The notes under the pieces: model-generated
What the model saw: only the letters and a program-made list of their open reading frames with translations
Database searches by the model: none
What the model was told of the DNA's origin: nothing
NCBI RefSeq assembly: GCF_964204865.1
Contig: NC_135251.1
Location: 21,948,001 to 22,012,000, forward strand
From: Styela clava
Taxonomy: Eukaryota
DNA: 64,000 nt
Direction: 5' to 3'
Translations under genes and position numbers: made by a program
In this document: positions 6,222 to 53,291 of the stretch, in pieces
How positions within the stretch are numbered: the stretch's first letter is position 1
Layout: every line of letters begins with the position of its first letter

Positions 6222-8637
6222 TCACGTGCGTTCTTCGTCAAGAAGTCCCTTTAAAAGTAATCCCATTTCTTCAATTTTAGTAATGGGAATTACAAAATCA
6301 CTCGCCGAAATGTCACTTTTAATAGAAAGTTTTTTACTTCTCACTGGTGAGCGAGTTACAAAAATATATCTTGTGTTTTCCTCGACGTATTCGGCGCAGT
6401 CGCAGTTACGGGATTTGAGGGTCACAGGGGATTTTCCTTTGACGCGTTTTAGTGATATTTGTCCTCGTTTTGACTTGATTAATTTCATGTTTCCCAACTT
6501 CCATTGCCTTTGTGTCTTTCGTTTTGATGGTGGAATTATTTCTTCAACAGTTGCGACGTACACTAAAAATACATAACTGTATTAATAATCTGTTTATATT
6601 ACACAGCGTGCAATTATCGATAATTTTTATTAAGATCAAACCATGTTTCGTTAAAAATCAATTCGAAATTTTAATTAAAAAGTAAAATATGAAAGCAAAC
6701 TCACCATAAACTTTTCCGCGTATAGCTTGGATTTTTTCTGCCGTGATTGTGCATTCTGAAAAAAATACAAACATTTTTTACAAATATAACAATAATTTCA
6801 AACAAGTATGATAAGACATTTCATAGTTATCTTACTTTTCATTTAATGTTTTATATTACCATACAACTATACTCACTTTGTTCGAATAAAGGACATTGAA
6901 TTTTTTCCACTGAATCTCCGTTACAATCATGAGTTTCTGGATAGTAAGGCTTTTTCCGACAGCATCTGTAAATTAAAATGTAATATTTTACAACCAGCAA
7001 TTTAAATTTCATAAAAGTAGTGAATTAAAAAACAATTGAGAATTTATTTTACCTTGCTCCACTGTTGTACGAAACGGCAGCTGAGACTTCATTAACGCAG
7101 CAAATCTGTGTGTCTGGGTCATAATAGTTGGTTCCAGAGTCGCAGCAGGTGTTTCCCAATAGTTTCAGACCTTTATAAAATTTGTAACCGCAGCACAAAT
7201 CAGCTGATGTATTGTAGATTTTACTGGAACCGCACATCGCTTCTTGAGGACCGAGATTGTAAACTCCTCCATTTACGCACACCTGTTGAAGAAAACACAA
7301 AATAAATTAAAATTCGATTGAAAACTAACTCCCAGGAAATCTGACAAGCTCAGTATATTGAGATCAAAATCACTTCGTTTAATTACACTATATATCCACT
7401 TTCAAAGTTAGTTGCACAACAAGTAATGAAAAATTACGTACCGTTTTGTCATCTCTTGTGTAAGGGGTTACTGAAACACCTCCTGACCCTGCATGGAAAC
7501 ATATGTCATTTTGATTCGGATCTGTTTTTTGATATAACTTGCCGCTGGCACACAGAAACGAAAACATGTCATATACTTGTGGTCGAGGCCCCATGCAACA
7601 ACCATGCGTCTTTGGATCGTAGAGTGGAGCTTTTCTTGAACTACCGCAGGATTTGATACCGGGACTAGCTGTTGAAAATAACAGAGAATTTATATTTTTA
7701 ATAGAAGAATAATTTTTAGGATAATTGTTTTTAATATGTAATAATAATATTTAGGACTTTGGTGAATGCACTTATAGTATTTATAATAAAATAGAAAATG
7801 AAAAAATAAAAAAAATGAAGGAAAATTACTTTTGTTATTGACTCGTAGAGCACCGTGTTCTGTATGGTCACAAGATTGCTTCAGGGGGTCGTATGGGACA
7901 TCTAAGCAACACCTTCCGTACGGTAATGCCGTCAAGTTTTGTCTTCTTCTACGCGGGTCGTTGTGTGTCTGAAGACAGCACGTTTGTTCTGACTTTTTAT
8001 ATTTGACCCCCGAACAACAAGAATCATCTGGCCCAGTCAGATATTCTCCTAAGCAACATTCACCACCTGTGGAATAGAAAAAATGTTCGTTTCAATGCGA
8101 GTAAAGATATCGTTGTTACATTGTTTGCATTCGTTCTGTCGACGAATGATTATGTAGTAAATTTTGTAACAAACAGAACTTACCTGGGTGCTTGTTATGT
8201 ATGTTTCCGTTGCAACAAACTTGTGATGTTGTGTTGTAAACGTTCTTACCGCAATTTAATTCTTCTGGTGCTCGCGCTCGTATTGCACCGTGAACACAAA
8301 TTTGATCAAGAATGTTGTACATTCGTCCAGAACCTAAGTAACAAAACAAAAAAATTTCGATATATATCGTGTGCTGGCGGGAAATGGTACACAATTAATT
8401 TACAACGTATTACATACCTTGACAACATTCGAAGCCGTCCCTCATAGAAAGTACTTGGAAGGTTCCTGGATTGGGCCCGTCACAACAAAGCAGTCCTTGT
8501 TTTCGGCAGGAAAATCTTTGATCTCCTCGATAGCATAAATTATTTTTACACGACAAAACAGATGGACTTGACGGTTTGGCAGTTGAAGTTCCCAAGAGTA
8601 GGTACATCAAAACACATATCATCGCTGCAAATAACAT
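6222..8637 (-). CDS. Secreted galaxin-like di-cysteine-repeat protein with C-terminal NTR/C345C-like domain, paralogue 1 (~514 aa, 8 exons)
   Basis: Exons 8418-8637, 8184-8333, 7830-8066, 7442-7668, 7053-7282, 6877-6965, 6705-6755, 6222-6562; all GT-AG, phases consistent, 1545 nt. Signal peptide MLFAAMICVLMYLLLGTSTA; repeated CC...Y[ND]P..Q.CC motifs (YNTTSQVCCNG, YDPKTHGCC, YDPDTQICC); C-terminal basic module with CDCAEYVEENTRYIFVT. Confidence 0.88.
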
Positions 8638-8873
8638 TTTGTCAGTACTGTTATTGAATTTTAAAATCTAAATGTGCGGAACTTTGCCGGAGGTCAGGGT
8701 CTTCTAACAATGAGGTAATATCTTGTGACTTGTAACACTTTTTAACGTCACTCCCAATTACAGAAACTAATTTCGCAGAAATTTAGTATCTAATGCTTCC
8801 TTCTAAGAAGACAGTTGTGCAGGCACTGAGGGCATTTAAAAGCAGCCGCATCAATGTAACGCCGATTCCGGTA

Positions 8874-8880
8874 TTTATAT
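8874..8880 (-). promoter_or_regulatory. Candidate TATA box of paralogue 1
   Basis: Minus strand reads GGTATATAAATAC about 240 nt upstream of the ATG; weak evidence in AT-rich DNA. Confidence 0.3.
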
Positions 8881-11800
8881 ACCGAGCAATTAATCTTTTT
8901 ACGCCATGAAAAAACGCCGGTTTTCGGCGTCATAAGGTATTTGTACGGGATGGTGCAATCCAAAACAACGATTAGGCAAGCGTCGAGTTGAAAAGAACGA
9001 ATGATAACAAACGCACGTGTCTTTGACAGCGCGTGTTCTCTCGTTTTACCGTTCGCTATATTTCATATTCAATGCACAGCACAATCAAATGAAAGGAAGC
9101 TTATTACGTTCAACACAACATATTATAGCGTTCAATACATAATTTAATTGAAGATACGCAATTGTTTCTGTATGATTTCTGATATATACGCAATGTATTT
9201 TAAAAAAATTTTTAAAACCTGTTGGCTAATAACTTTGTGATCGTATTTGTAGGTACAAGATATACCGATAAAACAACTTACCTATTTCACAGTTAGTCAT
9301 CTTTTCTGTTATAAGGATGTTCTCAGTTCAGTTAAACAAATTTCTGTATATCCCAAACCGCTTGTAGCAGGACCTGTGTTTTAGGACGATCACTGTTAAC
9401 TATTCTGCAAAAGGTAATGTCCGTCGTTTTTATATTTGTTTCAAAATATAGTCTGGGCCATTTCAGGGGACTTTTTTCGAGTGAGATCATTTGTCGTCAT
9501 CTACGTATTTTTATTTTTTATTGTACCAATACCTCAGATGAGATGAAAAGAATCGACTTGAAATCGAGATATCTGTGATTTGTTGTTTATGAAAAAGGCA
9601 TCTTTGTTTCACTTCAGTTTCGAGATACGCTAGACTGCACACCACGATTCAAAGAGAATGGAGGATAGACCATAACCACGCCGTGACGCGACCGGCTTTC
9701 GATTGCTTTCTGTCGGCGTTGTCTTTTACCTGGCGCTGGGGAAAGTTTTTGTAGTTTTCGTGGTATTGTGAGTGTGCTGAAGAAGTACAAGTATTAATTA
9801 GTATTCCACATGTGTTTTGGTATTTTGTAGTTATTGTATTTTGACCATGAAAGTTGAGTATATTTTAGATAAGTTTCAGTTTTAGCCGTGAATGTTGGAA
9901 CTGCGCAGAATGGATTTTACAAGGTAAATATGCCGATACCTGTTTACACAGCCCAGCAGCTAGACGGGATATAATCATCGGTACTGTTGTACTGAATTGG
10001 TGCGTACGGTATTATGCTTGTACACGTGAAAAAAAACTTAGTTATACTGTTATAGGTGAATAGTTCGCCCAGCCCAAATACTGGAATAAGATCGTTGGCT
10101 TATGTCATGTATATTATTCATTGGCTATTTTTATCATATTTAATCACGAGTTCTTGAATTAAACTACATTTAACCTGACATTTTATAACCTTCACACTTA
10201 TGTTGTAGTCTAATACAGTAATACTTGTATCAAGTTTTTTTCCAGTATTATCTGCGAACTTTAGGGTGTGTATGAGTATTATAAGTATATAAACACTAAA
10301 AATGAGATTGAACACAGGACCATAAATAACAATATCTAAAAATTGTTAGCTCATTTATTGTCATTTTTGTATTAATATAATTGCATTGAATTGAATACAG
10401 TATTTGGGTAATAGCCATCTTTAATCAGTTTGTTTATTTATTATTTGATGTGTTGCGATGTTGTTAGCCTAGCATATAAAATGTATTCATAATTAAAGTT
10501 TTGTTCATAACAATTCAAACATAATTTATCCTTTCAACATAAAAGTCAGATATATATCATTAAGCAACTGACTGACCTCTACAAGAATTTCTTACTGTTT
10601 GCCTTATTCTAGCACTGAAATGACAAGACTATATTGATGGTTTAAAAGTTTGATTAGAATGGAAATACCTCACTTGTGCTCTTCTCTATAGCTTTTAATA
10701 CGATCTACCTTTTTCGTTGCAAATATATGCGTTTGATATAAATTGCTGACATATTGTGCATTTTTCATAGATTTTGAGTGACTTCCATATCAAATGATAA
10801 CTACCGGTAAATTGTATGAAAATTACCAAAGGTCATGAATTTTTTGCAATTTAGTTTCTGGGGAACTATTGGGTCATTATAGCAATATTCAAGATGTTCC
10901 ACCTGTACCTGGTGGTTTGAAATAGGAAAGTCATCATATATTTTGTCGGTACCTCTCATCCTAAAATATCATACAGGGTTGGACATAAAAATGGGTTTGT
11001 ATTGGGATTACTTTGTCTATATAATTTGGACCTTTGAAATTTTAAATTGCTCTGATGCAAAATATACCATATTTATCTATATAGCTTGTTGTCACCCCTA
11101 AATTTTTTCCAAACTGGTCTCACTCTCAGGAAAAAGGCCTGCCGAATCAATCATGACTATATTGTTTATTTATGGAACCGCTTTGTGAAGGGAGTCAAAA
11201 AAGTTTTTGGAATGATCTATAATAGTTTTCAATGATTATCTGTTGTGTCTGTATTCATGAATATAAATTTAAAAAAATCAACTGCAACGTCATTTGGAAA
11301 TGAAACAAGTGCAATAATGGTTTTGACGAGAAAAATACTCAATAAATATATATAAATATTAACACCATTTCTGACCAAATTAAGGAAATATGCAAAGTAG
11401 TCCCTTGTAGGGGCTGATTCACAAAAGATAAATATAATTCTTACTGGTTAGAGAAGGGGGTTTTAATTTTATCAAAGTGGCAACCTGTTTTTTTTTCATA
11501 TCTCTATTTCTGTTCACTGAATTATCATATTTTAATTAAATAACCATTGCCCATAACACCTTACTCAGTTTCTACTCAATAGTACACACAAAACAGTGAG
11601 TATATCACATGGTAAATATTTTTGACATCTTTGGCAATAATTTATCCTTAAGCTAGGTGGAATAGAAATGTAGTTTAATTGGAGTTTGCTGGTTTCCAAT
11701 ATCTCAATAACTGACATTATTGCTAATATAAATATAATTGACATCTTTAAGTATTTCTAACATAGTAATTTTTGTTTTTTTCAAACCAATTGCCAATGGT

Positions 11801-12453
11801 AAAAAAAAATAATGCCACATTTTTTATTTCAAAATTTAATATGAATCAATGTTATCACATCATCATCATCTGCATTATAACATCACACAATTCTTAAAAA
11901 CCTCTATAAAATTTATAAGCTTCAAATTATAAATTTGAACATTCAAATTTTAAATCTATACACAATAATGACTGTTTCTGCTATATTTACAACTTTCCTA
12001 ATGGTGCTACCAAACTTCCTGCACTGCCTTCTGGGTCCTTTTTAATTGAATGAAGAAGGTTTTGCATTTTTATACAATAAAGAAACAAAACATTTCTCCT
12101 TCTTTCCACATTGGTTGTGTGGTCATGTTCTGGGCAAGTCTGGGCAAGATATCATTATTGACCGCCAATGTCTTGTTTTGTTCTCATGCTATTAGTAATT
12201 GTATTTTTTTTCAATAAGCGATTTATCTCTAATAGTTCACTTACATATTATGAACTTGGGTCTCCTTCTCTAATTGCTGTACCTTTTTCTCTGCTTTTTG
12301 TTTAAACCATAGATATATTATGATGCATTTTATATTTATCTATCAACTGTCTGTCTGAACCTTCATAACTCGGTTGTTGAGATTTTGCCGAACTACTAAT
12401 TTGTCAGACACTGACTGAATTTATATATCTTTGGTCACTTTGGTTTCATCAAA

Positions 12454-24536: not shown

Positions 24537-24935
24537 CAGAACTGACAATTGAGAAGGCGTGTAGCCATGTTAGCCACTATGCTGCTAAACTCAACACTTC
24601 CAAATATTTTTGCATTAGATATTTGCTTGTTCATGATTTCTTTTTATCAATATACAATGACCACAGTTCAGAAACATGACAAATGAAATGTTGCATTAAG
24701 ACTTGCTTACAGTGTACCTTTTGAAAAAAGGACTAAATATGTGTGACAGAACTGACAATTGAGAAGGCGTGTAGAGCCATGTTAGCCACTATGCTGCTAA
24801 ACTTAACACTTCCTAATATTTTTGCATTAAATATTTGCTTGTTCATGATTTCTTTTTATCAATATACAATGACCACAGTTCAGAAACATGACAAATGCAA
24901 TGTTGCATTATTTTCTAAGACTTGCTTACAGTGTA
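24507..24935. repeat. Tandem duplication (~210 + ~219 bp) covering the MED6 stop, the intergenic region and the METTL12 stop
   Basis: Copy 1 24507-24716, copy 2 24717-24935; both start ccttttgaaaaaaggactaaatatgtgtga and end aagacttgcttacagtgta, with a few substitutions and indels. Confidence 0.95.
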
Positions 24936-25576
24936 TAAAAAATAGTCCCTCACAGATGTAAATTGCTGACAGGAAATGCTGATATTAGAAGTAATATCAT
25001 CTGGTAACCTTTTGGCAGCTTCTTGTAGAAGGTCGATGCGCAGTTCTGGTGGTTCGTCTGTCACTTGTATTAAAACTCCATCTTTGCATAATATTTTATA
25101 GATGTTTGCCAACGCTCTGCTTGCTAGTTCAGTTCCTTTAGGTTGCTTTAATATAGAATCTGTAGTACCTTTATCCAGTGCTGCACAGATACTTCCTGTA
25201 GAGAACACTTGTTGCTCTGCTATATTAGCATGAACAAGAGTGCAGTTTCTGACATTATCAAATTTTGAGTTTCCATCCATTTTGTTTTGAAGCCTCCACA
25301 GTGAATCGATTGCAAAATCCAGACAGTATACTTCAACATCTTTCAGATCATATGCAATGTTTGCCCCAAAAGTTGAGTCTCCGCAGCCTATGTCCAGCAA
25401 GTATGGTTTTCTGTTACCTGGATTATCTTGGGCACTCAGTGCAGTTCTTATCATAGGTAGAATGGAATCCTTCAGATCATCATAATTTGCAAACCATTCG
25501 AAATCTGGGTTAGGTTTAGTGGTTCTATAGAATTGATTCCATGTGTCTAACAATCCAAGAGATGAGTTTATGGAAT
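24915..25576 (-). CDS. CSKMT: Citrate synthase lysine N-methyltransferase (METTL12/CSKMT) domain exon; predicted exon 3 of an NME6-METTL12 fusion
   Basis: FEWFANYDDLKDSILPMI, SAM-binding motif I LLDIGCG, ALDKGTTD, GVLIQVTDEPPELR and YFLYTV align with recalled METTL12 (FDWFFGYDEV, VLDVGCG, LLDKGTWD, LIQFSDEDPDVR, YFAYLI). Preceded by acceptor tgtttcacAG (25577-25578); no in-frame ATG before the conserved N-terminal motif. Confidence 0.85.
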
Positions 25577-25646
25577 CTGTGAAACAATGTGATTTAATAG
25601 TGAGAATTTGTGTGCAACAGAAACTAACCAACTTATATGAAATGTT

Positions 25647-26321
25647 TTAATGAGGTGGTATAGCCTTACTTTTATCCCAATGAAATTGTGTGTTTGTGTT
25701 ATACTCTTTGGTGGAAGCAATGTCGACTGTGTTTTCCCCAAAAATTATCTCGATTTCTCTGTTGGCAGATTCTTCAGAATCTGATCCATGTGTAGAATTT
25801 CTTGTGTCTGTTAAACCATACTCACCCCTCAACGAGTATGGTTCTGATATATTTGCCTGTGAACATAATTGCAAACATTAATAATATGTATCACACAACC
25901 TGCTTATGTTGTTGTGGAAGCGAATTGGGAGCAATATTTTTCTTTCGCCAACAAGATTTACTGGACTAGGTATGCAACAGAATTCCACATTGTAGTTACC
26001 CCCAATCCGAAAAAACTTGACCTTAAAGACTTTCGTTGGACCCATTAGGCTGCGCCAAACTTTTATAGAATCTTGTCCAGCAAGCACTAAAGCAATTACA
26101 GGACCACAAGTAATGTAATCCAGAAGTCTTTCATAGAAGAATCTCTCACTGTGCTGGTTGTAAAAAATCTCAGCATCCTTTCTTTTCCAGTGAACTGTTT
26201 TCTTTCTCAAAATGCGCAAGTTGTTTTTTGAAATACGATCGGTAACTGCTTTCGTTGCGATGGGATTCAGGGCAATATCTGGCTTTAACAATGCGAGCGT
26301 TAATTGAGTCTTTGATGACAT
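25647..26321 (-). CDS. NME6: Nucleoside diphosphate kinase 6 (169 aa stand-alone; exon 2 can instead splice at 25670 to the METTL12 exon)
   Basis: Exon 1 26022-26321, exon 2 25647-25856. QLTLALLKPD, RFFYERL, WRSLMGPTKVF and GLTDTRNSTHGSDS (catalytic His intact) are diagnostic of NME6. Confidence 0.93.
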
Positions 26322-26767
26322 ATTTCATGACTACGCAGTAATCTATTATAATTTTAGGTCTAAATTCAAATATGAAGACAGAAATATTTCAATACAAGAC
26401 TACAATAGTAAATGATATTTATCCAAATAAAGAAAAACCATCAACAAGGCAAATAAACCACTGACATTCATTTTTTTACATTATAGTTTGAGCATGCGAT
26501 TAATAGATGTGCCAAATGGACAAACAAAAGTTTTATATCAACAGTCCCTGTGCATAAGCTGATAAAGTAATGGCACAACAAGCTTTTAATTTTAGATATT
26601 TTTGCTTAAACATGTTTTTATCAACAATTATCTTTGAAGAGTTTTGTCATACTCTGTAAACCAGCAAGCGGTGAAAACATTTACTTATGTTTGCTAACTA
26701 TATATAGTGAGTTTATTTTTCTCTGCAACTGGAAAAGAAATAAATGCAAAAACATGTATAACACATA

Positions 26768-26842
26768 CAGGGTGAGCCAAAAGTAGGGCAACAGTTATTA
26801 CAATATCAACAATTAACTGTTACCTCAATTTGGCCCACCCTG
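26768..26842. mobile_element. Palindromic Tc1/mariner-like MITE just downstream of the NDUFB4 stop
   Basis: TA-CAGGGTGAGCCAAAAGTAGGGCAACAGTTA ... TAACTGTTACCTCAATTTGGCCCACCCTG; CAGGGTG termini. Confidence 0.6.
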
Positions 26843-26874
26843 AACATATATTTTCACACACACGGGGATATGTA

Positions 26875-27465
26875 CTAGTCCATCTGGGCTCGACTATTGA
26901 TACTGGGGTGCAGCGCATGAACATTCTTTTCCATTTTTCTTCGAAGTCCTAACTCGCTATAAGTAAAATACACAATAGTGAGTATTAGGACAACAAATGC
27001 TTTGAAGTAATCATTTGCAGACAACCACTTCGCTGGGTCATCCAGTGTGTAGTAAACACTTCTAACTCTGTTGAACTTTGCAAACATAGGATCGGAAGTG
27101 ATAAGATTAAAATATCTCCAATTAGTGGGATGATACTTCTTTGTCCAAAATTCTCGCCTTAGTCTTCCACGAATCGCTTGCCTCTTTTGGTGCGCTTTCA
27201 GATCCTCCGGGGTCACATTTTTACAGTTTTCGGGGTCAATTTCAGCCGGCATATCATGAGCCCAATCAGCTCTGAAGTCTTTGGTAGGAGCTAAATATTT
27301 TGGAAATAGTTGTTCACCCATAACTTCCGAGTATTGCTTATAATCGATTTGTTTCTCCAACTTGCCATCTTTTGCAGTGACGGATGGTAATGTCGAAAAT
27401 CTTTTATTAGAACAAAGATCCATCATGGCCCTGCAAGCAGGGTAAGGCACCTTCAATCTCAACAT
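26875..27465 (-). CDS. NDUFB4: NADH:ubiquinone oxidoreductase subunit B4 (B15)-like, single exon, with N-terminal extension (196 aa)
   Basis: FPKY...MPAEIDP..NVTPEDLKAHQKRQAIRGRLRREF...HP...DPMFAKF aligns with recalled NDUFB4 (FPKY...LPETLDP..ISPE.RRAQAERLAIRAQLKREY...DP...NPALLRW); one TM segment near the C-terminus. First ATG at 27465 (the ORF track starts at a TTG). Confidence 0.8.
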   Translation of the reverse strand: MLRLKVPYPACRAMMDLCSNKRFSTLPSVTAKDGKLEKQIDYKQYSEVMGEQLFPKYLAPTKDFRADWAHDMPAEIDPENCKNVTPEDLKAHQKRQAIRGRLRREFWTKKYHPTNWRYFNLITSDPMFAKFNRVRSVYYTLDDPAKWLSANDYFKAFVVLILTIVYFTYSELGLRRKMEKNVHALHPSINSRAQMD

Positions 27466-33528: not shown

Positions 33529-33606
33529 TTCAATGGTAATTCTTGTAAGATCATTTTGACATCGCCTCAGTGGAATACGGACAACAGCTTACTGTGATAT
33601 TACACG

Positions 33607-36600
33607 ATGGCAGTTTTATTGAAAGTTTTTTTTCTTGAGTTAACAATATGTGGTAAGTTTTTTTGTTATTAGTACTATTAAGATATCACAAGTATTAGCC
33701 TATTAACTTGAACAGTCTTATGTCGATTTGGTTAGTATGAAACTTAAATTCATTTAAATTTCGAACCCGGCAATACTATGGTCCGCTCGATTGAACAGTC
33801 AAGCCAGCAATTTATGAATCAAGGGTAAACAACGTACAAAGAGCTTACGAACAGTCAGTACATACTTTCAGGACAGTCGTTTAGGCTCGGAACCCTTGTT
33901 GAAGTTGCTGTCAGAAACGGTGCTATGCTTAGCGATATGAAATTTGATAAGATGAGCTCAAATTAACTCATGATTCGATCAAATATTAAAAATCAGAATT
34001 ATTGTCCCTAGTGGCCATTTTTGCTTAATTACTATCGAATTTGGCCCTGATACAAAATTAGAACAGCCTTGAAATGTATATTACAGATGTAGATTAGGAT
34101 AGGATATACTTTGTAATTGAGATTTAAAACAAAATAGGGATTGCCAATTACTGCTTCCGTTGAATAAATAACGTTTGCTGGCTTTGTACCTTCAGAGTAG
34201 CAAATTAACGCGGTAAAAATTTCCGTCTTTTCTCTGAAAAGAAATATTTTTTGTAATGAAATAATGATAAGGAAAAATAATAAGGATAAGGATAAATAAG
34301 GAAAATTTGGCTCGTATCGAAAACTGTATATTTAACACTTGCCAGCAAATTTATCGAGTTTGAGAATGTTCTGTGGAATATAGTAGCACGTCGGTCAATT
34401 TGGACAGAAACCACTTGCCGGCTATGCGGAAATTCCAGCTGGAAAGTTTTTATGATGAAATCGTAATGAATAAAGATTTCGCAAGAGAAGTTCTGTTCGT
34501 CAGAAGTCGATATTTCTGCGCTACGTAGAGTGCTTTCTGTAAATGTTCACACCGTCTTTCATTCATAAAAAATCTCAGCGGCTTATTCAAGCGTGAATAC
34601 GAGTGAAAAACCAAACAAAAGTGTGAAGTGTACTACGAATTATTGCTGTAATGAAGTCCTAAATTTATTCATGTTTTAGTGTGATGTAAGGTAATGAGTG
34701 ATGAATGGGGCCGACGTGTTTTTTTTGATATACCTGTTTTTAGTGTTAGATCTGAATTAAAAATTTACCATATGACCCTAAGTTAAATTTAAACTAAATA
34801 TAAATCTGGTGAAATTTTGTATTTTAGGTTTTTTAGTGGCATCGACAACGGGTAACGAATCTTCAAATAGAAATGATTACAAATGTACACGACCTGGAAT
34901 TTGCATCGATGGTACGGGAAAAGAGTTCAGATGCGTCGTTAAAAATATGGAATGTTGCTTGAATTCACAAAACATACTCAGTCTTTACCAAGCACCACGA
35001 GGAATGACATGCTGTGGCGGTAAGTTATACACGAACTAAAATTAAGGAGCTGCTGTTGACAGTAGTTAACACCGTGTGGGATCCATACGTTCACGCATTA
35101 TTTCATTCATAAAATCTCAGCGATTCATTCAAGCGTGAAGGCAGGTTATAAACAAACCACAATGGTGACGAAGTATAGTTGCAGTAGGAGCTATGGCGAA
35201 AAGTTCACAAACTCGTTTAGGTATTCATGTACAATAAAGCATATTGTAAGAATTCTGTACAGAAACAAAAATTACCTATATTGTGATTGATTTTTTAGAA
35301 TACAACAGCACTACTTTATTTATCTATCGAAATGTTTTTTATCGATTTTGATACTTTTGTGCTAAACATGCCGATCCTTTACAATTCAGGGGATGGAATG
35401 TTTCATGAACAAACACATGATTGTGTAATAAATGAAAAAGGAGATGGGGAAATACAACTTCGAGAAAATGTCATATTTTGCCCCGGAACTGAAATGTATT
35501 ACAATCCCTCGAGTCAATTTTGTAGTACCGGAGAAAGTGGAAAAACTGAAGTTTTGATGCTGAAAGGTATGAAATATTGTAAGCCAGGCCAAGTCTTAAC
35601 TAAAAAGAAATGATGTGTTGCTAAAATACACTCGCTGTCCAGTATGCTTGATTTTACTGAAAGGCGTCTGATATTAATTACCCTTTGTTTTTTTAGATTA
35701 TTCCCTCAACTCAGCATCGCCATACACCGACGTTAATAGGCCTTATACTTGCGTAAGCTCGCGAGTATGCTCCGATTCATCAGGACGACGGTTTAAGTGT
35801 ACTGAGAAAAATGTAGAATGCTGTTTGAATAGTTTCAAACAGCTTGTTTTCTCCAACGCAAAAAGAGGAATGACGTGTTGTGACGGTAAGCATTGGCACC
35901 AAGTTATACCGTATATATCAACTAAAAATTTGTTCTTTTCTGCCAACTGCAACATTACTTCACAGTAACAATTTTTAAAGCAAATTCATAACAAAATGTC
36001 CTTTCGTAAGTTGATCCAAATGATGACCAGTTGTATCGTTGTAATACAGGAGATGGAATGTATCTGGAACAAACTCAGGAATGTGTTGATGGTAAAATAA
36101 CGCTGAGAAAAAACGCTATAGTTTGTCCTGGCACGGAAATGTACCATAACCCCTCATCTCAGATCTGCTGTACGGGTAGCAGTGGACTAACTGAAATACA
36201 TATGATTGAAGGTAAGGTGCATTTATTTTCCGTGAAATATCAAAAATCATTATTTTTATATTGAATTTTATCCTACTTATTGTACCAACTTTGTAGATGG
36301 TAAACTATGTTGTGGCACAAACTACATTAAAAACTCTACTACGGGTTGCTGCTCCGAAGAAGCATATGACAGAAAGGCTGAATGCTGTAAAAATCGAATT
36401 AAGGCTCCGGCTAAAGAATGCGTTGACCCAACGGGAGATGATTCGAGAAAGAATTCGAGATTGAAATGCACAAAAGAAACAGGTGAGAGAAAATTTCATT
36501 GCAAACTGAACTTACACCACAATGTTTTTATTGAACTAACCCTATTATTGGCCTGAAAACTTGCAAGTCTTAAAAATGAAAGAAATTTTATTTTCAGTTT

Positions 36601-37164
36601 CGCTATTCCAATAAATAGATTCATAAATATTGAATAAATCTTTTTTTCTCAGTATGTTCAGATAGAGATATGGAGAAACGATCGAAGTCATTTAATCACT
36701 GGTCTTACAGTAAGTTTCATTTGATATTTATTTTACTAAAATAATATTTGAATCGCCCGAAAAGTAACGAAAACACTATTTTGAATTTTGAAGCGGGAAA
36801 TATGATTGTTGTTTTTTCATTTTAAATAATTTTAATGAATAATTGAAAATGAAATTTTTTTTTGCATTTTCTTATATGTTTTTATAATTTTTCAGTGTAC
36901 ACATTCGAAGTAAGCAGGTTCAAGCGAGAAACTGAAACTCATCTAGTATACAGAGTTAAATTATGTAGACAGTTTATTGGAACAAGACGCAAAAAGATTG
37001 GAACCGAACAATGCAACTTGAAATATATTGAAATACCCAGATGTGAATGCCCAGGACAACTTGTGCCTGGCGTTAATTATGTTCTACGTACAAGACAAAA
37101 ACTCAATTCTAGAAGAATGGTGTTGAACGGAAAAAAGTTTTATATCTCCCAAAATAAATTGTAG
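33607..37164 (+). CDS. Galaxin-like/NTR protein paralogue 2 (~425 aa, 8 exons, exon pair 2-3 duplicated)
   Basis: Exons 33607-33652, 34828-35019, 35390-35566, 35697-35885, 36050-36211, 36297-36482, 36653-36709, 36896-37164 (1278 nt; all introns phase 1). Signal MAVLLKVFFLELTICGFLVA; CC repeats; NTR-like CECPGQLVPGVNYVLRT. Confidence 0.88.
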
Positions 37165-38386
37165 ATAAAAAGTCGAAATGTATTTTTTCGACAAAGTGTA
37201 TTTTATATTTCTTTGCCACAAATAAGTTATGAGACAATTTTTTTTTCTTTAAAAAAAGATGCATGTGTATTTTTAGTTATTTTGTAATTATATAATACGC
37301 TAATTTAATTTTTCTTATTTATTTGTAAATAATACTTTTCTATATTTTTTTTACCTTTCTACAAGAATTTGATATTATACTGTCACTACTGTACTGACAA
37401 CTGTTATGCTTTTTTTGTGCAATTTTCTAAACAGACTGCTATAATCATTGTATTTTTTTTTTCAATTTTTTCTTATTTATGTGCGATCGCCTTGTTACAG
37501 TTTCATGATAAAGATGCTCCGGTCCAAACGTTTCAGCCATTTTTGCCATGTGGGGTTGACTAGTTTTAACACCGATATTTACAATATTTCATAACACTGA
37601 AAGTTAATCAAAAATTCTATTTTTGGAGCTCGGTTTACAAATTTGAAACATTATTATATTCAGTAAATATCAAACTAGGTTTTGAATATGGAATTATATA
37701 TTAGTATTACAAATTGCCGTGTTGTAATATATTAACAATTGGATTTAAAAATTACATCATGGATTTTACAAAGCAAATTTTCTAAGTTGAATAAAGGGCG
37801 ATTTGGAAACTTTTCAATATACCATGTTACTTTAAGAGAGTTGTAATTGAGCATATTTAACTTTAATTTTGCATAGATGAATTATTTGTCTTTCCTCGTG
37901 TTACATAATATATTCTACATCCAAACAACTTTGCGTTGTTGTACATATTTTTTATCACATATTTATTTAGGTGTACTTTATATCAAAATGTGTTAGCTGC
38001 GCTTTAAAATACGCGACCATTAGATCAGAATGGCCGCCAAAATATTTTTAAAACCAAAGAAATTTTCCAAAAATTATTCTAAACAAATTGGGTGTGCAAA
38101 ACGTGGTGTTTCATGAAATATTTAGTACACATTACTTCATATTTTTGTTATTATTTTCAATATATCTTGATTGGCAATTAGGACTTATTTTTACTAAAAT
38201 CAACCTTTTGTTTATTTCTTTTTTAGGAAAATTGTAGTTTGAATGTAAAGTTTTTTAAGCACATTATTTATATGTATATTTTTAGAAATTTAAGTTTAAG
38301 CCTTTAAGACAATGTAAATGGAATTAAAGTATTGTACATAGCAATATTGAGTTTATGTATATTTGTTGTTATACAATGGTATAGAG

Positions 38387-38685
38387 TAGAGGCGGATAAG
38401 GTTCTTGAATCAGGGCCAGAAATTTTGCCCATCCAGACTGGCGGGCCATGTAAGTGTGGTTTAATTTTATGCAAATAGTTACAGTGTTGTTACAAAGCAA
38501 AGGTGGAAAACAATATGCCTCGTGCCAAAACTAAATTTAACCGTATTCTCAACAAATTCCTCGAGCTATTTTTATCTAAAACATCAAAATTTGGTTTCAG
38601 TTTGGTTGTGGTAGTATCGGGCGGGCCAGAATAAATTACCTAACAGGTCAGATTTTGCCCGTGGGCCGTACTTTGCCCATGTCTT
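38387..38685. mobile_element. hAT MITE with perfect 8-bp TSD
   Basis: TSD GTATAGAG at 38379-38386 and 38686-38693; subterminal GGGCCA/GCGGGCC motifs; degenerate TIRs. Confidence 0.75.
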
Positions 38686-38697
38686 GTATAGAGAGAC

Positions 38698-38994
38698 CAG
38701 TGGTTCCCGTCAGGGTTCCAACAGTATAGTCCAGTGTTTCTGCGAATTTCCATTCAAATCCGAAATTTGTATTTTGTTTATTTAAATATAATCAAATACC
38801 TTAGGTTTGTCACTATATTTAGAAATGCTACATTTCAATAATCCTTTTGTTTTGCCAATATAGTACAATATATTAGGTCAGCTTTTATATATACTTATAG
38901 TTGATACAATTCAGACGATAAAAGATAACTCAAGGGTTCATCGAGATTTGATATGATTCATTGGGCTCCACTAAAAAGGTTTTGAAAACCATTG
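38698..38994. mobile_element. hAT (Charlie-like) MITE adjacent to the previous element
   Basis: CAGTGGTTCCC ... AGGTTTTGAAAACCATTG; ends similar to the 16360 element. Confidence 0.6.
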
Positions 38995-40664
38995 ATATAG
39001 AATAGACTGTCGAGGTGAAATTCATCGCGACCTAACATCATTCTCTGAGTAAGGTGGTCGACATGGAGTTATAACCTTAGAATTTTGAACCTGCTGGTTG
39101 CATACAGTTTCAACAAAGTTAGGTAGAGCTTTCCGACCAAAATCGTCCTTATTAGAAAGTTTGGTCGATTGAACACTCTTATAATTTAGATTTTAGATCG
39201 AAGGTACGAAACAAACTCGGGATATATAAGTCCATAACTTGTGACGTGTATCCTTGCGTCTACCGCATCTGTTTGTTTTAGTCAATCTGAAATAAAGGAT
39301 CGTATTCGAGTCAGAAAACTTCCGATCGCGCTTGGACAAAACAACCATTTCAAACCGATAGGCCATTCCATTTCATTATTTTACTGTGTGACTTCCAAAG
39401 TTCGGTGCTATTCCTCTTTCTGTCGGGGTGAACTGAGTTAGGGTAAAGCACTAGGCTATGTTGCGATACAACCACCAATGGGTCAATATGTAAAGTATGC
39501 TCATAAGGAAAACGTAGTTGTTTTCGACGCACGGGAAATCACCTGACGTAATCTTTACTTCTACAGAGCGCGACCTTTGTCTTCCATATTACTCAAAAAC
39601 ATGTTTTTCGGCATCGGTAGTATCACGTGCTATTATTCAATTTAATAAATTTTTTATGTTCCTGACGTTCTTTGTACGTTAGGTATCTTTCTGCGAAACG
39701 GAAAGTACTTTACGCAATCGACGTAAAGTTACCACCCCGCATGTGATTTTGGTGGTATTTTTTCGGGACAGTCAGCTTACCGGGCTATTATGTCATAGAT
39801 CATAACATGTTTGTCTCACCCATCCGCGATTGATTTTAATTTCATATTACAAAGATTGAACAAACATGTTTTTTAGTCTAAACTGAAGAAATTGCGTCAT
39901 CCTTACGCCATGTGCGACAAACATGTGCGCAAAGAACAACGTTGTTCATTTCTTGTCAAAGAGAAAAGTCATTTTGATATTTTGGTTAATGATGATTTAT
40001 TACAGTTTATATCCTTCTATTGAAGAATATTTGACGGATTTCTTTACTCCACACATTTTGACACGATAATGTACATTATTATGGTGAGAACAGAAACGTT
40101 CTGTCTATCTTTCACCATATATATATCTGTTTTAAATTTCAAAATGTCGTAAATTTTTCTCTGTTTGTAAAATAATTTCATCGGTCAACAAATGCAATTA
40201 ATGACTAAGAATTTATTGAAAATTGTAAACACAAACGTGCAGAATACTAAATCAATAAGAAAAAGACATTTTCCAGAATATAAACCATTTTAAAAAGAGT
40301 CTCGTCGTTTGTCCCCTGTCAGTCACACATGCCAGTACTACCACAAATTATAAATAGAAAACGCCTTATCAAGAGTAAATTGTATATGAAATAGAATATG
40401 GCGGATATTTTAGTAGCAAACAACAAGAGCGATTCTTGATATTTATTGTACCTAATGTGTTATAATAAATCACTGGCAGTTTCACTAGTATGAACAGATA
40501 ACGCCTTTGCACGAGTTAACCGGACATAATATGAATTGGAGCTGTTTGTGGACTTGACGAAATTTAATTTATCCATATCATACGTATTATTGGCTTATAT
40601 GAATAAATATTTAAAGTGTTAATTAACAAGTAGAGGCACAAATTATAAATTGTACTTGAAAGTG

Positions 40665-43379
40665 TTATAAGTGAAAAACTTTCGCAAAAACATCTGTTGA
40701 ATTTACGGATAAAATAAAGTATTTATTTCCATGCAAAAACAATTTCTTAAAATATACTTTTGTTTTTGTTATTACAACATAATCAGTCCCGATACGGAGA
40801 TTTTTAGGACACCCACATTTAGGTAAACCAACGATTTTTAAATTCTTTTCTACCGTTTTAATTTTTCCTTTCTTCCCGAGCAGTTGTTTTCCGTATTTTA
40901 CTTTGTAAATTTGGTGAGATGATGTTTCGCCTTTTATTCTTCCTACTTGAAATGTAAACACTGGGGAATAAGATATGAAAACTATTTTTATCATTTTTCA
41001 AAAACTCGAAATACGTACATGATTAATATATACAATAAAGTACTCACTGTACGCCGCCATATGCCGATGCAAATGGAATCTTTTTTCCATAACAAGAGAA
41101 GAACAAACTAAAACGTAGAAAGCATTATATAAAAAAGATTCCAGAAAATGGTTTAAAAATTAATGGGAATTATGAGTCAAAAGAAAGCATAGTTATGGTT
41201 AAAAGAACTAAAGAATAATCAGATAGTTTATAGCCCGTTATGTATAAAATTAAATTTATTGACAATTATGCCTCATTGAGTATGAAGTTCCTGATTCTTT
41301 CCGTTACAATGTCCAAACAGCAAAATGATTGACAAAATAATCGCAATTTATCCCGTAAGTTAGAACGATATTTAAATGAGCTTAAAAGCATCAACTCGAT
41401 TTTGGCTTTTTAGTAGGAATTTCCAAGAATTTTTTTTTATAATTGATTGATTAAAGGAATAAATCGACTGAATTTTTTTTAATTTAGCTGCAGTAATGAA
41501 GAGCGGCCCAAAATGACAGAATTTCAATATGAGTGACGTAGTATGTAAGTAGAGAAAAATTTTCATGGATTAATGGTCTTGAAAATATCCATACGATGTA
41601 ATAAATATTCAAATTCAATAGTATAGAAACTAATTACAAATGTAGAAACCGCTATCGATTATAATTTAATTTTACTATACCTCGTTTTGTACAGTTTGTT
41701 TCACCAAAAATTTTCGAATAATTTTGAGACTTGGTATTAGATAATCCGTGACACTCTCGTATTGGTGATATCAGACTTTTATTTTTGCAACAGAATATAT
41801 TTTTATCGTAGCTTGTATCATTACAACATCCCTTATAATCAGAATGTACGTATTCAATGCCACAACACATCTTTAACCCTGTATACATAAATAAGTGCTA
41901 CTTTGGTATGCGATCTCACTTGCTTTAACGTTATCTTAACCGCATACCAAAGTGGTATCAATTGTGGTGCCACTTTGGTATGCCTCCAATCGCATAAAGA
42001 CATTCTCATAGAATTCAGTTCCCAATCCGGTCTGAAATCACACAGACCATACCGAAGTAGCACCCACAAATATATGTAAAGAAACTTAATATTTTAACAA
42101 TATAATCACTTTGAAAATTATAATAAAACTAATGGATGGATGGTTGATTAAGAAACCAGAATGGGCTCATATTTGAATTGTCTGTAATTTATGTTCGTAT
42201 TCGTTTATATGTATATATATTATTAATATTAATTCAGTAATTTGGAGGGAACATGACCATATTTACCGTATTTGTCAATCTTGAAATTTTCATTTACCTT
42301 CTGTTAGATATTGCATTGATTGATTACCCCCATGTAACGTGCAGCATGTCTGCGTATCTTGATTATAGAAACTATTTGATCCGCATGGTAGCACATTTTT
42401 TCTGTTGAGTAGTGCTCCATTAACACATTTGTGAGTTTGAACGTCGAATATGCCCGCACCTGATTAAAATGTTGCAATTGATACAGTATTTTAAATTCTA
42501 ATTTTGGTTTATTTTTATGCTTGGGTCTGATTTATGTACTTTAAGCACCTTCACAACATTCCTTTCCTCGAGGATATTCCTCAACTGCCAAAGTTGCATT
42601 ATTTTTCCGACAACATTCAACATTTTCTTCTGAGCATCTGAATGTATTGTTGTTCACATCAATGCAAGAAAATGGTTTCAAGCATCGAAAAGGTTTCCGT
42701 CTAGCACAAATGACATTGCTTTCTGTGTTAAATATTAAAATATGGAATTAGGCAAGGCAATCCTTTACGAAATTTTACTCGAGAACCTTGTTTGTACTGT
42801 GACGAGATTGCTTGCCCAAGGCCCCACGGGAGAGAGAAAAGGAGAGAGCAGTCAACCGTTACTGGAAATACCCGTCCGTTCCCACGCATATTTATTATTG
42901 ATCAATAGTTTTTGCATCTTGCTCTCAGAACTAGACTCGAATTCGTCTTTAATGGGAAATTGCATCTTTTCTATGCAAAAGTTAAAAATTCGATAAACAT
43001 GCATATGAAATGCGCTTAGTCTTTAGGAATAAGATTTGTGGGCTTCACGATTTTATTTTTCAATTTTAACATGTATTTGTATATTTTAAAATAAATTTTG
43101 CATTATAGCAAAAGGAAAATTAAAAAAATATTTCAACATAAAATCTTATGATTTCAATGTTAACGTGCACTAAAAGCACTTGAAAGCAAACATCAATAAC
43201 GTTTAGATTTTATTGCCTTAATTAATATGTGTCTAATTTTCATGAAAATTGCATGTGTGAATATTCCACATGAAGCAAATTTCACACAGACGTATATTAA
43301 ATCTTCAGTAAAACATTCACGTACCTCCGTATATCCACAGCCCGCAAAATACAAAAAAGAAGACTTGTTTGAATACCAT
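40665..43379 (-). CDS. Galaxin-like/NTR protein paralogue 3 (~314 aa, 6 exons)
   Basis: Exons 43325-43379, 42549-42722, 42298-42459, 41681-41878, 41048-41107, 40665-40960 (945 nt; all introns phase 1). Signal MVFKQVFFFVFCGLWIYG; FRCSEENVECC...PRGKECC; FYNQDTQTCC; NTR-like CGCPKNLRIGTDYVVIT. Confidence 0.88.
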
Positions 43380-43464
43380 TTTCACACTACTATAAAGTCC
43401 TGCAAGCTTTACCCAGTTGAAAATCAAAATTGATTCAATAAACTTTATTGTCGTCCTCATCTAC

Positions 43465-43471
43465 TTATATA
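43465..43471 (-). promoter_or_regulatory. Candidate TATA box of paralogue 3
   Basis: TATATAA about 90 nt upstream of the ATG at 43379. Confidence 0.4.
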
Positions 43472-49400: not shown

Positions 49401-50030
49401 ATGTGGGATAGTGAAAAATAATTAAAGCTGTAACCAAAATATATTGAAGCCTCAGGTAAGTGTTATGTTTGAAAGTATAAAAAGTATAAATACAACTGAC
49501 AGGATGAAAACTAATTGAGAACTATACGAAATCGATCGAGAAAATCTTAGGTATCGCATATTGTCAAACATTAATCACGATTACGTACAGCTAATGATAC
49601 GCAACTGCTATGGATCGTTGTTTTTGTGCTATATTTTTATTTTTTTTCAGGCGCCAACCTGAAACATGATTGACTAACATATGTACATGGTTTAGTGACA
49701 AAAATAAATAGAAAATAAAAATTAATTTAAAGTGGACAACAATACATCTGCGGAGGTGACATAGAATGTAATTTCTATAAAAAAACATTGGAAGAAAAAA
49801 TGAAATATTAAAATGACGAGATACTAGTAACTTGCTGTCCAGGCGAGTATCTTGTGTCCGGAATATATATATATTTGACTTTATAATATAATTATAAAAC
49901 CAATCTATCACAATCATAAATAAATTACGATCGAGGGTAAGAGAGGCCGAGGTCTAACATATTAATGAAATATAACAGTGGCACAAAAATTCTTTATGCA
50001 AAAATGTTGCTTATATATATATGCTATATT

Positions 50031-53000
50031 TTAAAAAAGGTTATTGCGGGTAATATAGTAATTTTTCCCATCCAACATCAACTTTTTCATAACTATTTTT
50101 TGTCTTGTTTTTAAAATATAATTGAATCCAGAAACAAGCTTTCCAGGGCATTCGCATTTTGGAATGTCGATGAATTTCAAATTGCATTTCTTTGTGCGAA
50201 TCTGCTTTTTTCGCTTTCTTGTACCAGTGTATTGTCTGCAGGAATTTGCTTCATAAATAAGATGAGTTTCCGTTTGTTGATTGAGTTCACCAACAGTGAA
50301 TGAATACACTAAAAAGAAAACACAATTTCAGTTTACGTACACCATAAAATCATGCGGGACAAATACACGAGAAAAAATAGCTAAAGAAATTTATTGAAGA
50401 TAGAAGAACTCTTGAGTTTTCACCAGCTGATAACGATTTGATTAAAATGTTGGAATCTGGTAAAACTTGATTATCACGCAGCTGAAACAAAAGGAATAAA
50501 GAAACTAGCTTTACGGTAATTCAAAATAAATTAGAATAGCCAAAATCAAACTTACTATATGAAGGCTTGTGTGAATGAGAGTGAAATGTTTTCTCCATAA
50601 ATTCCTCTGAACATTCTGAAATAAAGTTTTATTTAGAAATTCTGATTAGAATATTGCATTAAATCAAGTAACGGAAAGTTTTAATATAATTTCTATTTAA
50701 TAATTACTATTTTAGTGTAAAAAAAAATCAGATAAATTTATTATTCCATAATAATTCTCTATATTTTTATAACTACTAGGCACTACAGTAGTGGATACGA
50801 AAACTTCTCTTACCTAGTTCTTTGTGGCATCCTATTTTTTCAAAAACTTCATGTTCTTTCGAACAATCTTGAGCTGAAACTATCATTCTGTTTTTGCAAC
50901 ATTCTGATTTCCTGTTGTATTCTTGACCATTACAACATCCCTTCGTTGAGTTTTGTATATAATTTTCTCCACAGCAAACTTTACCATCTAAGTTTAAAAA
51001 TTTCATTTCATTTATAGTAATATATTATTCAGTTAAAAAAAAAATACGGAGTATATCACAACTGAAAGATATTCTCTCAAATACAAATCCCACACAACAG
51101 AAAATTGTTCGACATAACAGACTATAAACCGGTGGAAAATTGAAATGAAAATCGCTTCACAATGGGTAGTTTAAAAAAAAAACGGCCTTATTTTATCTTA
51201 TAGGGAGAGGGCAAAGAATCTACAATGAAGAAAGGTAAATCTATACTAACAAATTTAAGTTGATTCAATCATTCAGCGTTGGTCATATCAGAGAAAGATG
51301 TCGGGGCTTTTTTCTTAATTAGAAAATTGTTTCATTCAAAATGTGTTTCGTCTTAATTTCTTACCTTCAAGTAAATGAACTTTCGTCTTCCCACTTTTGC
51401 TTGTGCAGCATGTCTGTGTTTTCGTGTTGTGCCATTCATCTATTGTGTTAGGACAAGTTCTAACATTTAGTCGTCGAACAATTTCTCCATTAACGCATTT
51501 TTCTATTTGCTCGTCAAACATACCGGCACCTATACACGAAGTAATAGATAGGTAGATAGTAGTTAGATTGGTGTGTGAATGAAATATTAAACGGTGGCCG
51601 GAAATTTGTGCCGCGTACACGTTAGTCGTACAAGTGAGAAGTTATATGAAGTGCTGTTAATTGAGTATCAGGAGATTACAATTTCATATGATATAGTGAG
51701 TTAGCATGGTGATAATATACATTTATTTCATGCACATAGAGCTGATAATTTTTGAATATATAAGTCAAATCTTACCTGGGCAACAAAATTCCCCTCGTGG
51801 GGCATTGAATAGAACAAATTGGTCTTCTGTTTTTATATGGCAGCATTCAAGGTTTCTTGTAATACACCTGAATTCGTTGTCATTTTCATCGTAGCAAATT
51901 CCTGCTGATTTACATTTGTATACAGAGATATTATCTGAATCCGGTCGAAACGTAGGCAACGCATTGATTCCTGAAATGAATATTTAAAATAGTCCAAGTG
52001 GTCGGAAGATTTAAATTTTAAAATAGCAATTAGATATGATGAATTGTCATAATAATAATAATGACGATCTTAATTATTATCACTGCCATTTAATATTTCC
52101 ATGGCAATATCAGGTACAATACGCTCTCACATCTCGCGGCTGTGAGCACTCGAGCGTAAAGAGGCAAACAAAATTCTTCTTTGAATGGAAAGTACCGCTA
52201 AGCGAAAACGTTATGTTAACTGATATATACCAGAAGTTGTAATCACTTGTCTAGCTTAATGAAATTTAAGTTGAATCGGCAGCTTTTACGATAACAGGTA
52301 ACGGGCGGATAATATAATAAGTCTGACTTCAGTTTGCTTATACTTCGCTAATTTGGAATAATCACAATGCTAGTTATGTGGCAAACACACATACGAGTAT
52401 ATAGGCCTACTGCGAAATGGCAGTGAAATGTCACTTTCATATTATCGCTATTCATTCAAGTCATTCGCCTAACGTTACTCTAATTTTGACGTCCTATGAA
52501 TTGTAACGTTTCTAAGTTGGCCATTCATTTCTATACCGGTTGTAAATTTTCCGCCCCATTTTAACGAAAAACATCGAATTAAAAAAAAAATTATTCGATT
52601 TCAAAACCCTTTTAATGCCATTTTTTAAAACTTAAATAAACCATCTGAAGTCTTACTCTCTGATTCGATCATTACCTCTGTCACTCGTTTTCAGTAATAT
52701 ATCGATGAAGATATCATTAACAAACAAGATTTTTCGTATCGGCCACGGCATTTCCAGAAAACAATTGAATTTCGTCCGTTCGGTACAATATATATCACAA
52801 GAAAATGTCTTTTCGAAATCAGACTCACGAGGTACATTCTTTATGACTCCAACTTTCAAATTTCGAGATTTTTTGACTTTTAAAATTCGTTATAGACTGG
52901 CTGCTCACGATATTTTCGACAGCGAATGTCAGATATAATTTTCAAAAACCTCACAACGATCATACCGGCGTCAGTATACTGGAAGCAAGCAATTCCTACA

Positions 53001-53291
53001 TTCCATAAAAATCTCAGCAAAGCATCGTTAAATATCGTACAGCGAGACACTCACATCTGCCCACCGAGCGCGGATTTTGCGAGTGAAATGAATTTATTAT
53101 TCGTCAAAGCTCGCGGCGAAGGAAGTTTACTTTACACACAGCGGATTTGCGCTTAACCCATTGAGTCGTGATGCGACGAACAACGCTTGTCGGAACTTCA
53201 TAATAGAAGATCCGAAGTGTTATAAATAATTTCAACAAGGCAATGGCGACTCACCTCCCAGTAAGATAACCATGAATTTGAAAACGTCCAT
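50031..53291 (-). CDS. Galaxin-like/NTR protein paralogue 4 (~302 aa, 6 exons)
   Basis: Exons 53255-53291, 51776-51970, 51365-51529, 50814-50987, 50556-50615, 50031-50308 (909 nt; all introns phase 1). Signal MDVFKFMVILLGGINA; FRCITRNLECC...PRGEFCC; NTKTQTCC; NTR-like CECPGKLVSGFNYILKT. Confidence 0.88.

Follow-up and report, generated by a model that had tools for sequence, protein, structure and literature searches.

Galaxins, such as those of the coral skeletal matrix and the squid proteins EsGal1-10, are secreted proteins with tandem di-cysteine (CC) repeats and are encoded by tandem multigene families. The galaxins covered by the papers cited here consist of repeats only and are reported from cnidarians, molluscs and annelids (PMC4890752, PMC7853314, PMC12773714). 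NTR domains are basic and form a single β-barrel with N- and C-terminal helices, and the NTR-domain families named in one survey are TIMP, C3-C5, WFIKKN, ADAMTSL5, PCOLCE, netrins and sFRPs, with no galaxin partner among them (PMC3516229). Here we describe four genes, A to D, of the tunicate Styela clava, which lie in a stretch of 64,000 nucleotides (nt) of the 377-Mb assembly GCF_964204865.1 (contig NC_135251.1, positions 21,948,001 to 22,012,000). This whole stretch is referred to below as the window, and positions are those of the window unless another contig is named; it is gap-free and AT-rich (31-37% GC). The four proteins resemble galaxins in their predicted secretion, their tandem CC motifs and their tandem multigene arrangement, and differ from them in the tunicate host and in an NTR-like cap. 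That they combine galaxin repeats with an NTR-like module appears very likely from the evidence set out below.

A six-frame scan for Cys-rich open segments together with the tail motif C.C-x9/10-Y[VI][LVF].T found exactly four loci in the window, on the strands that the original prediction implied. A profile search with the four last exons retrieved the full-length RefSeq proteins of the corresponding genes (Table 1). All carry the label 'uncharacterized protein', and where precomputed Pfam annotation was displayed (A and B), PF24748 is the single entry. Exon chains were derived from canonical GT..AG sites with frame continuity, and their translations were then compared with database proteins; the database queries were single exons or proteins returned by database search, and the joined models were used for comparison only. 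The introns of all four genes are GT..AG throughout, and the chains are open, phase-compatible and stop-terminated. The models of B and D are identical to RefSeq proteins over their whole length (425/425 residues for P0003 and 302/302 for P0013), that of A has 510 positions identical to P0004, the two differing only at their beginning, for which RefSeq has a different first exon, and that of C is identical to P0001 at 305 of 314 positions, with nine substitutions. The models thus reproduce the RefSeq proteins, in agreement with the original prediction of four intact spliced genes at these places, and the end coordinate of that prediction, 53291, is the ATG of gene D isoform X2.

The order common to the four genes is signal peptide, Cys-rich modules, a short linker exon and a basic last exon. 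The linker exons measure 51, 57, 60 and 60 nt, within the range of 51-60 nt that had been proposed. The common motifs described for the family, namely C-x4-C...F[RKS]C...CC...CC in module 1, then G.G..[FY]...CV.G...Q.CC in module 2, CC repeats, and C.C-x9/10-Y[VI][LVF].T in the last exon, were found in all four genes, with one additional residue in module 2 of gene A (G-S-G-R-M-Y). All introns of B, C and D are in phase 1, and those of A are in phases 1,1,1,0,2,1,1. The N-termini of all four models, read by eye, are hydrophobic and signal-peptide-like. The four paralogues span a 47-kb cluster, which is interrupted because unrelated housekeeping genes lie between A and B (24915-27465).

As to the gene starts, RefSeq isoform X1 of gene D uses a first exon at 52751-52674 that gives an N-terminus without a signal-peptide-like appearance, and isoform X2 (ATG at 53291) has a signal-like start. 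Similarly, the RefSeq model of gene C begins 27 residues upstream of the Met that opens a hydrophobic, signal-like segment (43380-43460). The RefSeq N-termini of D isoform X1 and of gene C therefore look doubtful. Most of the nine differences between the window allele of gene C and RefSeq lie in a CC exon, B and D being identical to RefSeq, and variant positions occur in RNA contigs over gene C at 41712, 41739 and 41847. These differences point to an unusually high allelic diversity of gene C, or to a different haplotype block.

Transcript contigs connect the two parts of the proteins. Nine public runs contain 18-30% of the sequence words of 34700-42800, a share that fits exons only, and four of these runs were mapped on 35950-41949. 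In run X2, a single 766-nt contig of gene B consists of 36295-36479, 36650-36709 and 36896-37416, skipping two GT..AG introns, and an additional joint connects 36209 to 36295. In run X1, contigs of gene C join 40960 to 41048 and 41107 to 41681, with CT..AC ends that correspond to GT..AG on the minus strand. Accordingly, in B and C the last exon is linked to the CC-repeat exon through the linker in spliced contigs, as the predicted architecture demands. Contigs of gene B were found in run X2 only, and those of gene C mainly in runs X1 and X5, with one short low-depth piece each in X2 and X9 (~41750-41949). This distribution over four runs hints that B and C differ in expression; the contigs themselves are uninformative on expression level or strand.

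The repeat part is of the galaxin type. The Pfam family PF24748 (Galaxin_repeat, gathering score 28 bits) matches exons of all four genes. The gene A protein reaches 79.3 bits over three stretches, with 34.0 and 30.8 bits for single exons, and the B, C and D proteins reach 26.2, 27.2 and 27.7 bits (E 3e-6 to 9e-6), slightly below the cut-off. B, C and D are paralogues of gene A along the whole length. Galaxin repeats are thus recovered on exons and on whole proteins, in A above the cut-off, which bears out one half of the proposed domain composition; the other half, the NTR family PF01759, is matched by Pfam below threshold only. In comparison with typical galaxins, B to D have a short array, and the numbers of CC pairs upstream of the tail are 12 in A, eight in B, six in C and six in D. 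For the module-1 exons, Pfam gave no family. Exons 2-5 of gene B (34828-36211) contain an internal tandem duplication of modules 1 and 2, with 42% and 66% amino-acid identity, and the first module-2 copy is without the di-cysteine (Q-F-C-S instead of Q-x-C-C).

The C-terminal tails of the four proteins are homologous, with a similarity far beyond chance (D against B, E 1.5e-30; D against C, E 1.2e-13), even though their identity among the paralogues is 17-53%. Profiles of the A-type and the B/C/D-type tails align in hhalign over 99 columns with a probability of 97.9% (E 3.2e-13), and the same relationship emerges from hmmsearch across profiles in a small local database. The C-x-C and a Y at +11-12 are invariant, and four cysteine positions are common to the four tails, namely an N-terminal C-x5/6-C and the central C-x-C. 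The first Cys is encoded at the end of the last CC exon, the second together with the N-terminal helix in the linker, and the central C-x-C in the last exon. K and R account for 22-28 of the 114-130 residues of the tails, with an isoelectric point (pI) of 9.5-10.1. In this the tails are like the NTR modules of PCOLCE (PCPE-1), netrin, sFRP and C3/C4/C5, which likewise are C-terminal in a secreted multidomain protein, comprise ~115-130 residues and are strongly basic. The likeness extends to the predicted β-barrel, the N-terminal helix (in A also a C-terminal one), the N-terminal Cys pair and the C-x-C-P...Y-hydrophobic pattern. PF01759, with a gathering score of 21.9 bits, is the best family for the last exon of gene A (13.7 bits, E 0.054), below threshold. 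It is also the best family for P0007 (E 0.012) and P0009 (E 6.7e-4) and the second for P0006 (E 0.043), three homologous fragments from outside Styela described below, with 14.1-19.9 bits. In hhalign against three bona fide NTR exons of Styela itself (Table 1), the C-x-C...Y of the tails stands opposite C-C/C-x-C-P-K-L...Y-L-L-M-G of the netrin and sFRP exons.

Structure prediction points in the same direction. In the AlphaFold2 models, confidence is low for the repeats and high in the tail only. In gene D, residues ~205-312 have a predicted local distance difference test (pLDDT) score of 85-94 and form a helix (207-215) followed by seven strands; in gene A, the tail (pLDDT 75-87) consists of a helix (392-396), a barrel and a second helix (500-514). 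This C-terminal helix is modelled in A, with a similar extension in C, and B and D are without it. The top 20 Foldseek matches of gene D are mostly complement C3/C4/C5 chains that bear C345C; 6xzu_B and 1xwe, both of them C345C domains in isolation, and TIMP-1 also rank high. With gene A, 6xzu_B takes rank 2 (probability 1.00) among generic OB-folds. The Foldseek E-values are weak (best 9e-3) because the query was the whole, mostly unconfident protein. The models agree with the expectation that the tail would fold as a helix-capped β-barrel matching C345C, NTR and TIMP domains. In the ESM Atlas, the nearest neighbours of the last exon of B and of residues 385-516 of A are NTR clusters, at 0.93, with 186-189 of 256 features shared (189 for B); TIMP, NtA and meteorin clusters follow, and the ten best all belong to one clan. 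Taken together, the AlphaFold2/Foldseek fold, the language-model neighbours and the sub-threshold Pfam NTR family as the best one for the gene A tail argue for the NTR reading given in the original prediction, and the tail is very probably an NTR-type, TIMP-like OB-fold, as a very divergent member of the superfamily.

Within the Styela genome, exon-level matches, whether to proteins A and D or to either tail type, all fall inside the window, in the 47-kb cluster. PF24748 also matches two other loci with many typical CC-repeat exons, C10:3461605-3471079 and C5:11119526-11121522 (L008, L010, L011). Unlike A to D, these galaxin-like loci are without a detectable tail: in 50 kb around them (~20-30 kb each), open frames gave no match to the tail profiles (lowest E 0.057, on the wrong strand). 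Outside Styela, a profile search that covered 1.84 billion representatives exhaustively yielded only five short, unnamed open-reading-frame fragments that resemble the tails, four of them A-like (P0006, P0007, P0009, P0011) and one B/C/D-like (P0010), and no named vertebrate protein. These fragments hint that the tail may occur in other animals. A metagenome scan with P0007 alone gave no relative. Word-indexed searches whose queries were the A protein, the tail alignment and an alignment of all four proteins yielded nothing beyond Styela proteins, two short fragments and one weak galaxin-like protein, P0018; such searches are length-limited and are not evidence of absence. In the ESM Atlas, clusters with the label 'CQ058 protein (Fragment)', for the uncharacterised vertebrate UPF0450 protein C17orf58, count among the closest neighbours of the gene B tail (0.91), which is a language-model lead only; among the matches listed for the gene A tail there is no cluster of this type, and in the literature C17orf58 was found only in association or omics lists.

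No description of a galaxin plus NTR architecture was found in the literature or in annotation, nor does the domain survey cited above contain one, as the original prediction had supposed. In the literature, we found no paper that combines galaxin with tunicates and none that names the four LOC identifiers. 'Galaxin' and 'NTR domain' co-occur in one paper, a bivalve mantle transcriptome, where each term appears once; galaxin, netrin and C345C also co-occur in one paper, in which the domain is named only in a figure legend on agrin-like proteins. RefSeq already contains these genes as predictions; the novelty lies in the assignment of the domain and in the architecture.

The observations are probably best explained by a tandem, lineage-restricted family of four secreted proteins, each with a signal peptide, a galaxin-like scaffold and a diverged NTR/C345C module, for which anchoring to polyanions is proposed. 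The N-terminal signal peptide would direct secretion. It is followed by a scaffold rich in disulfides that is built from galaxin-like di-cysteine repeats and comprises from one to several sets of modules (duplicated in B and with the longest array in A), and then by the C-terminal module of ~115-130 residues, presumably a strongly diverged NTR/C345C domain with a TIMP-like OB-fold. This cationic module may anchor the protein to polyanionic partners, such as sulfated glycans of matrix or tunic and possibly microbial surfaces, and would thereby localise the rigid galaxin scaffold, whose role may lie in matrix structure or in antimicrobial action. Ascidian tunics are rich in sulfated polysaccharides, and the tunic matrix would therefore be a natural target. 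A glycan-anchor role of the tail is put forward tentatively, by analogy, because NTR modules in PCPE-1, netrin-1 and TIMP-3 bind heparin or sulfated glycosaminoglycans. Such binding is common among non-TIMP NTR domains, and the NTR of PCPE-1 is without metzincin inhibition (PMC2871463). From this analogy, we infer that anchoring to sulfated glycans would be more likely than protease inhibition. Phase-1 introns are usual for extracellular modules assembled by exon shuffling, and uniform phase-1 introns fit such an assembly. It is possible, albeit clearly less secure than the architecture itself, that the family represents a previously undescribed extracellular architecture which phase-1 exon shuffling produced in the lineage of the stolidobranch ascidians and which serves as a glycan-anchored tunic-matrix or surface-defence system.

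A different function, which is compatible with the same architecture, would be that of cationic host-defence effectors, as has been proposed for squid galaxins, in place of a structural role in the matrix. At the surface of tunic or epithelium, the tail, the repeats or released peptides would bind microbes and damage or agglutinate them. In squid, EsGal1 and EsGal2 peptides inhibit bacterial growth, and squid galaxins are strongly cationic and form tandem-like expanded families (PMC12773714; PMC7853314). The high pI of the Styela tails would suit such a function, as would the nine differences in gene C beside the identity of B and D with RefSeq, a pattern sometimes seen in immune genes, and the occurrence of B and C contigs in different RNA runs. 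However, the charge is located in the NTR-like tail and not in the repeats, the repeat parts having a pI of 5.9-8.6 (N-terminal parts of B 5.9, of D 6.4). In addition, the allelic divergence of one gene in a highly polymorphic species is weak evidence. We consider a defence function in this sense unlikely, though less so than the alternatives that follow.

Several results weigh against the interpretation given here, most of them against the NTR assignment. The PF01759 gathering score was never reached by any match, and neither the tails of B, C and D nor any full-length protein gave an NTR match at all. Profile searches of the tails against PDB sequences gave nothing relevant, only chance KH-domain matches at E 0.7. 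The hhalign comparison with the three Styela NTR exons is weak (E 0.046) and was used for register only. Of the six canonical NTR cysteines, the third and the sixth are absent from the tails, and B and D have two extra cysteines at non-canonical barrel positions. The alignments behind the AlphaFold2 models are shallow (nine sequences). As to the transcripts, the RNA nature of the runs was deduced from their spliced contigs. Since the tail reaches neither the Pfam threshold nor the six-cysteine pattern, we refrain from classing it among the canonical members of PF01759.

The sub-threshold Pfam scores, the missing PDB sequence matches and the two absent cysteines would also fit a generic or novel small OB-fold that is NTR-like by convergence, in which case the family would combine galaxin repeats with an unrelated basic β-barrel. 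A structural comparison with VIA-align against 48,161 representatives bears on this point. The best and longest structural matches of the models are C345C, NTR, TIMP and NtA domains, with moderate support (Z <8), and further down in this comparison, for both A and D, come PCOLCE NTR, agrin NtA, TIMP-1/-3 and the netrin-like AceES-2. Generic OB-folds (CTC1, RPA, Teb1 and similar) lie within one Z unit of the NTR clan. However, these comparably scoring OB-folds are all intracellular nucleic-acid binders and align over the barrel core only (74-99 residues), whereas the NTR-clan domains align over the flanking helices too (95-118 residues). C345C-bearing chains also dominate the Foldseek matches of D, an isolated C345C domain has rank 2 for A, the neighbours from the sequence-only language model are NTR, TIMP and NtA, and NTR is the only Pfam family that recurs across the tails and their outside homologues. 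Moreover, the module is extracellular, presumably disulfide-bonded, basic, C-terminal and flanked by phase-1 introns, with the Cys pair and the C-x-C-P...Y motif in NTR register. A convergent OB-fold appears improbable on these grounds, and a diverged NTR module is preferred.

If the tail is an NTR module, it might still inhibit metalloproteinases in the manner of TIMPs, whether attached to the galaxin scaffold or once proteolysis has freed it, and in gene C a K-R pair that precedes the linker-exon Cys by two residues could be taken as a sign of such release. TIMP inhibition requires the free alpha-amino group of the N-terminal Cys1, which coordinates the catalytic zinc. TIMPs are stand-alone inhibitors with a free Cys1, in contrast to the Styela module, which is internal and C-terminal, begins 197-386 residues into the protein and thus has no free N-terminal Cys1; nor is a processing site before the Cys conserved across the four genes. 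In addition, PCPE-1, whose C-terminal NTR represents such domains tested so far, shows no inhibition of MMP-2, of BMP-1 or of ADAMTS enzymes through it, and for the NTRs of netrin, C3-C5 and WFIKKN inhibitory activity has not been reported (PMC2871463). Because there is neither a free N-terminal Cys nor a conserved release site, TIMP-like inhibition is very improbable.

Finally, an annotation artefact, in which linker and last exons would be separate transcripts or pseudo-exons wrongly attached to galaxin-like genes, can practically be dismissed: although genes A and D are supported by canonical splice sites and agreement with RefSeq models only, CC exon, linker and last exon are physically joined in spliced contigs of B and C, the four chains are open and splice-consistent to their stop codons, and the same exon order and phases in four paralogues with such divergent tails would not persist in non-coding DNA.

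The surroundings of genes B and C show some further features. Downstream of the gene B stop codon, 37417-38340 is covered by contigs of all four mapped RNA runs, even runs without coding exons of B. They could be explained by a long 3' untranslated region of B, by a separate transcript or by reads of repeat origin. Odd back-joins between ~37451-37474 and 36846-36870 are seen in some of the contigs. Between B and C, a dispersed repeat of ~310 bp lies at 38380-38740; it has no Rfam match, 3,496 candidate genome copies were counted at first look, and the 40 that were scored in addition to the query's locus show 77-86% identity. This repeat accounts for the very great depth of RNA contigs (hundreds to ~1,770) and for their numerous loose ends at 38350-38750. 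An Rfam scan of the whole window found no RNA family.

Table 1. Coordinates of the four genes, their coding-sequence (CDS) exons and the exons of the NTR-like module in the window, and of the Styela NTR exons used for comparison (contig given; aa, amino acids)
Feature	Position	Strand	Remarks
Gene A, LOC120335234	6222-8637	-	window model 514 aa; RefSeq P0004 516 aa
Gene A CDS exons	8637-8418, 8333-8184, 8066-7830, 7668-7442, 7282-7053, 6965-6877, 6755-6705, 6562-6222	-	GT..AG introns
Gene A linker exon, 51 nt	6705-6755	-	codes for second N-terminal Cys and N-terminal helix of NTR-like module
Gene A last exon	6222-6562	-	β-barrel and C-terminal helix of NTR-like module, stop codon
Gene B, LOC120335696	33607-37164	+	425 aa; P0003 425 aa
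Gene B CDS exons	33607-33652, 34828-35019, 35390-35566, 35697-35885, 36050-36211, 36297-36482, 36653-36709, 36896-37164	+	7 introns
Gene B linker exon, 57 nt	36653-36709	+	joined on both sides in 766-nt RNA contig
Gene B last exon	36896-37164	+	NTR-like β-barrel, stop codon
Gene C, LOC120336657	40665-43379	-	314 aa from signal-peptide Met; RefSeq P0001 341 aa
Gene C CDS exons	43379-43325, 42722-42549, 42459-42298, 41878-41681, 41107-41048, 40960-40665	-	GT..AG, phase 1
Gene C linker exon, 60 nt	41048-41107	-	RNA contig joints on both sides
Gene C last exon	40665-40960	-	NTR-like β-barrel and short C-terminal helix, stop codon
Gene D, LOC120336093 isoform X2	50031-53291	-	302 aa; P0002 / P0013 315 / 302 aa
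Gene D CDS exons	53291-53255, 51970-51776, 51529-51365, 50987-50814, 50615-50556, 50308-50031	-	GT..AG, phase 1
Gene D linker exon, 60 nt	50556-50615	-	helix 207-215 in structure model
Gene D last exon	50031-50308	-	NTR-like β-barrel, stop codon
Styela NTR exons, netrin-like	C19:8805818-8806012 and C19:8704478-8704687		~100 kb apart; comparison sequences (loci L005-L007 together with C16)
Styela NTR exon, sFRP-like	C16:3403007-3403180		comparison sequence

The biochemical role of galaxins is still unclear, and a family on the chordate side, in a tunicate, with a basic NTR anchor would give a handle on where the scaffold is destined, be it the sulfated polysaccharides of the tunic, cell surfaces or microbes. 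Galaxin repeats would be a new partner among NTR-domain combinations, and the tails would show how far an NTR may diverge with its fold kept, down to four cysteines and scores below the Pfam threshold. Four 'uncharacterized proteins' of RefSeq gain a domain assignment, the tail being missed by automated pipelines. Should the outside fragments prove to carry galaxin exons, or should the tail turn out to be a relative of C17orf58, the family would form a bridge between galaxins and an uncharacterised NTR protein of vertebrates. Because Styela clava is invasive and a fouling species, its secreted matrix or adhesion proteins are of some practical interest.

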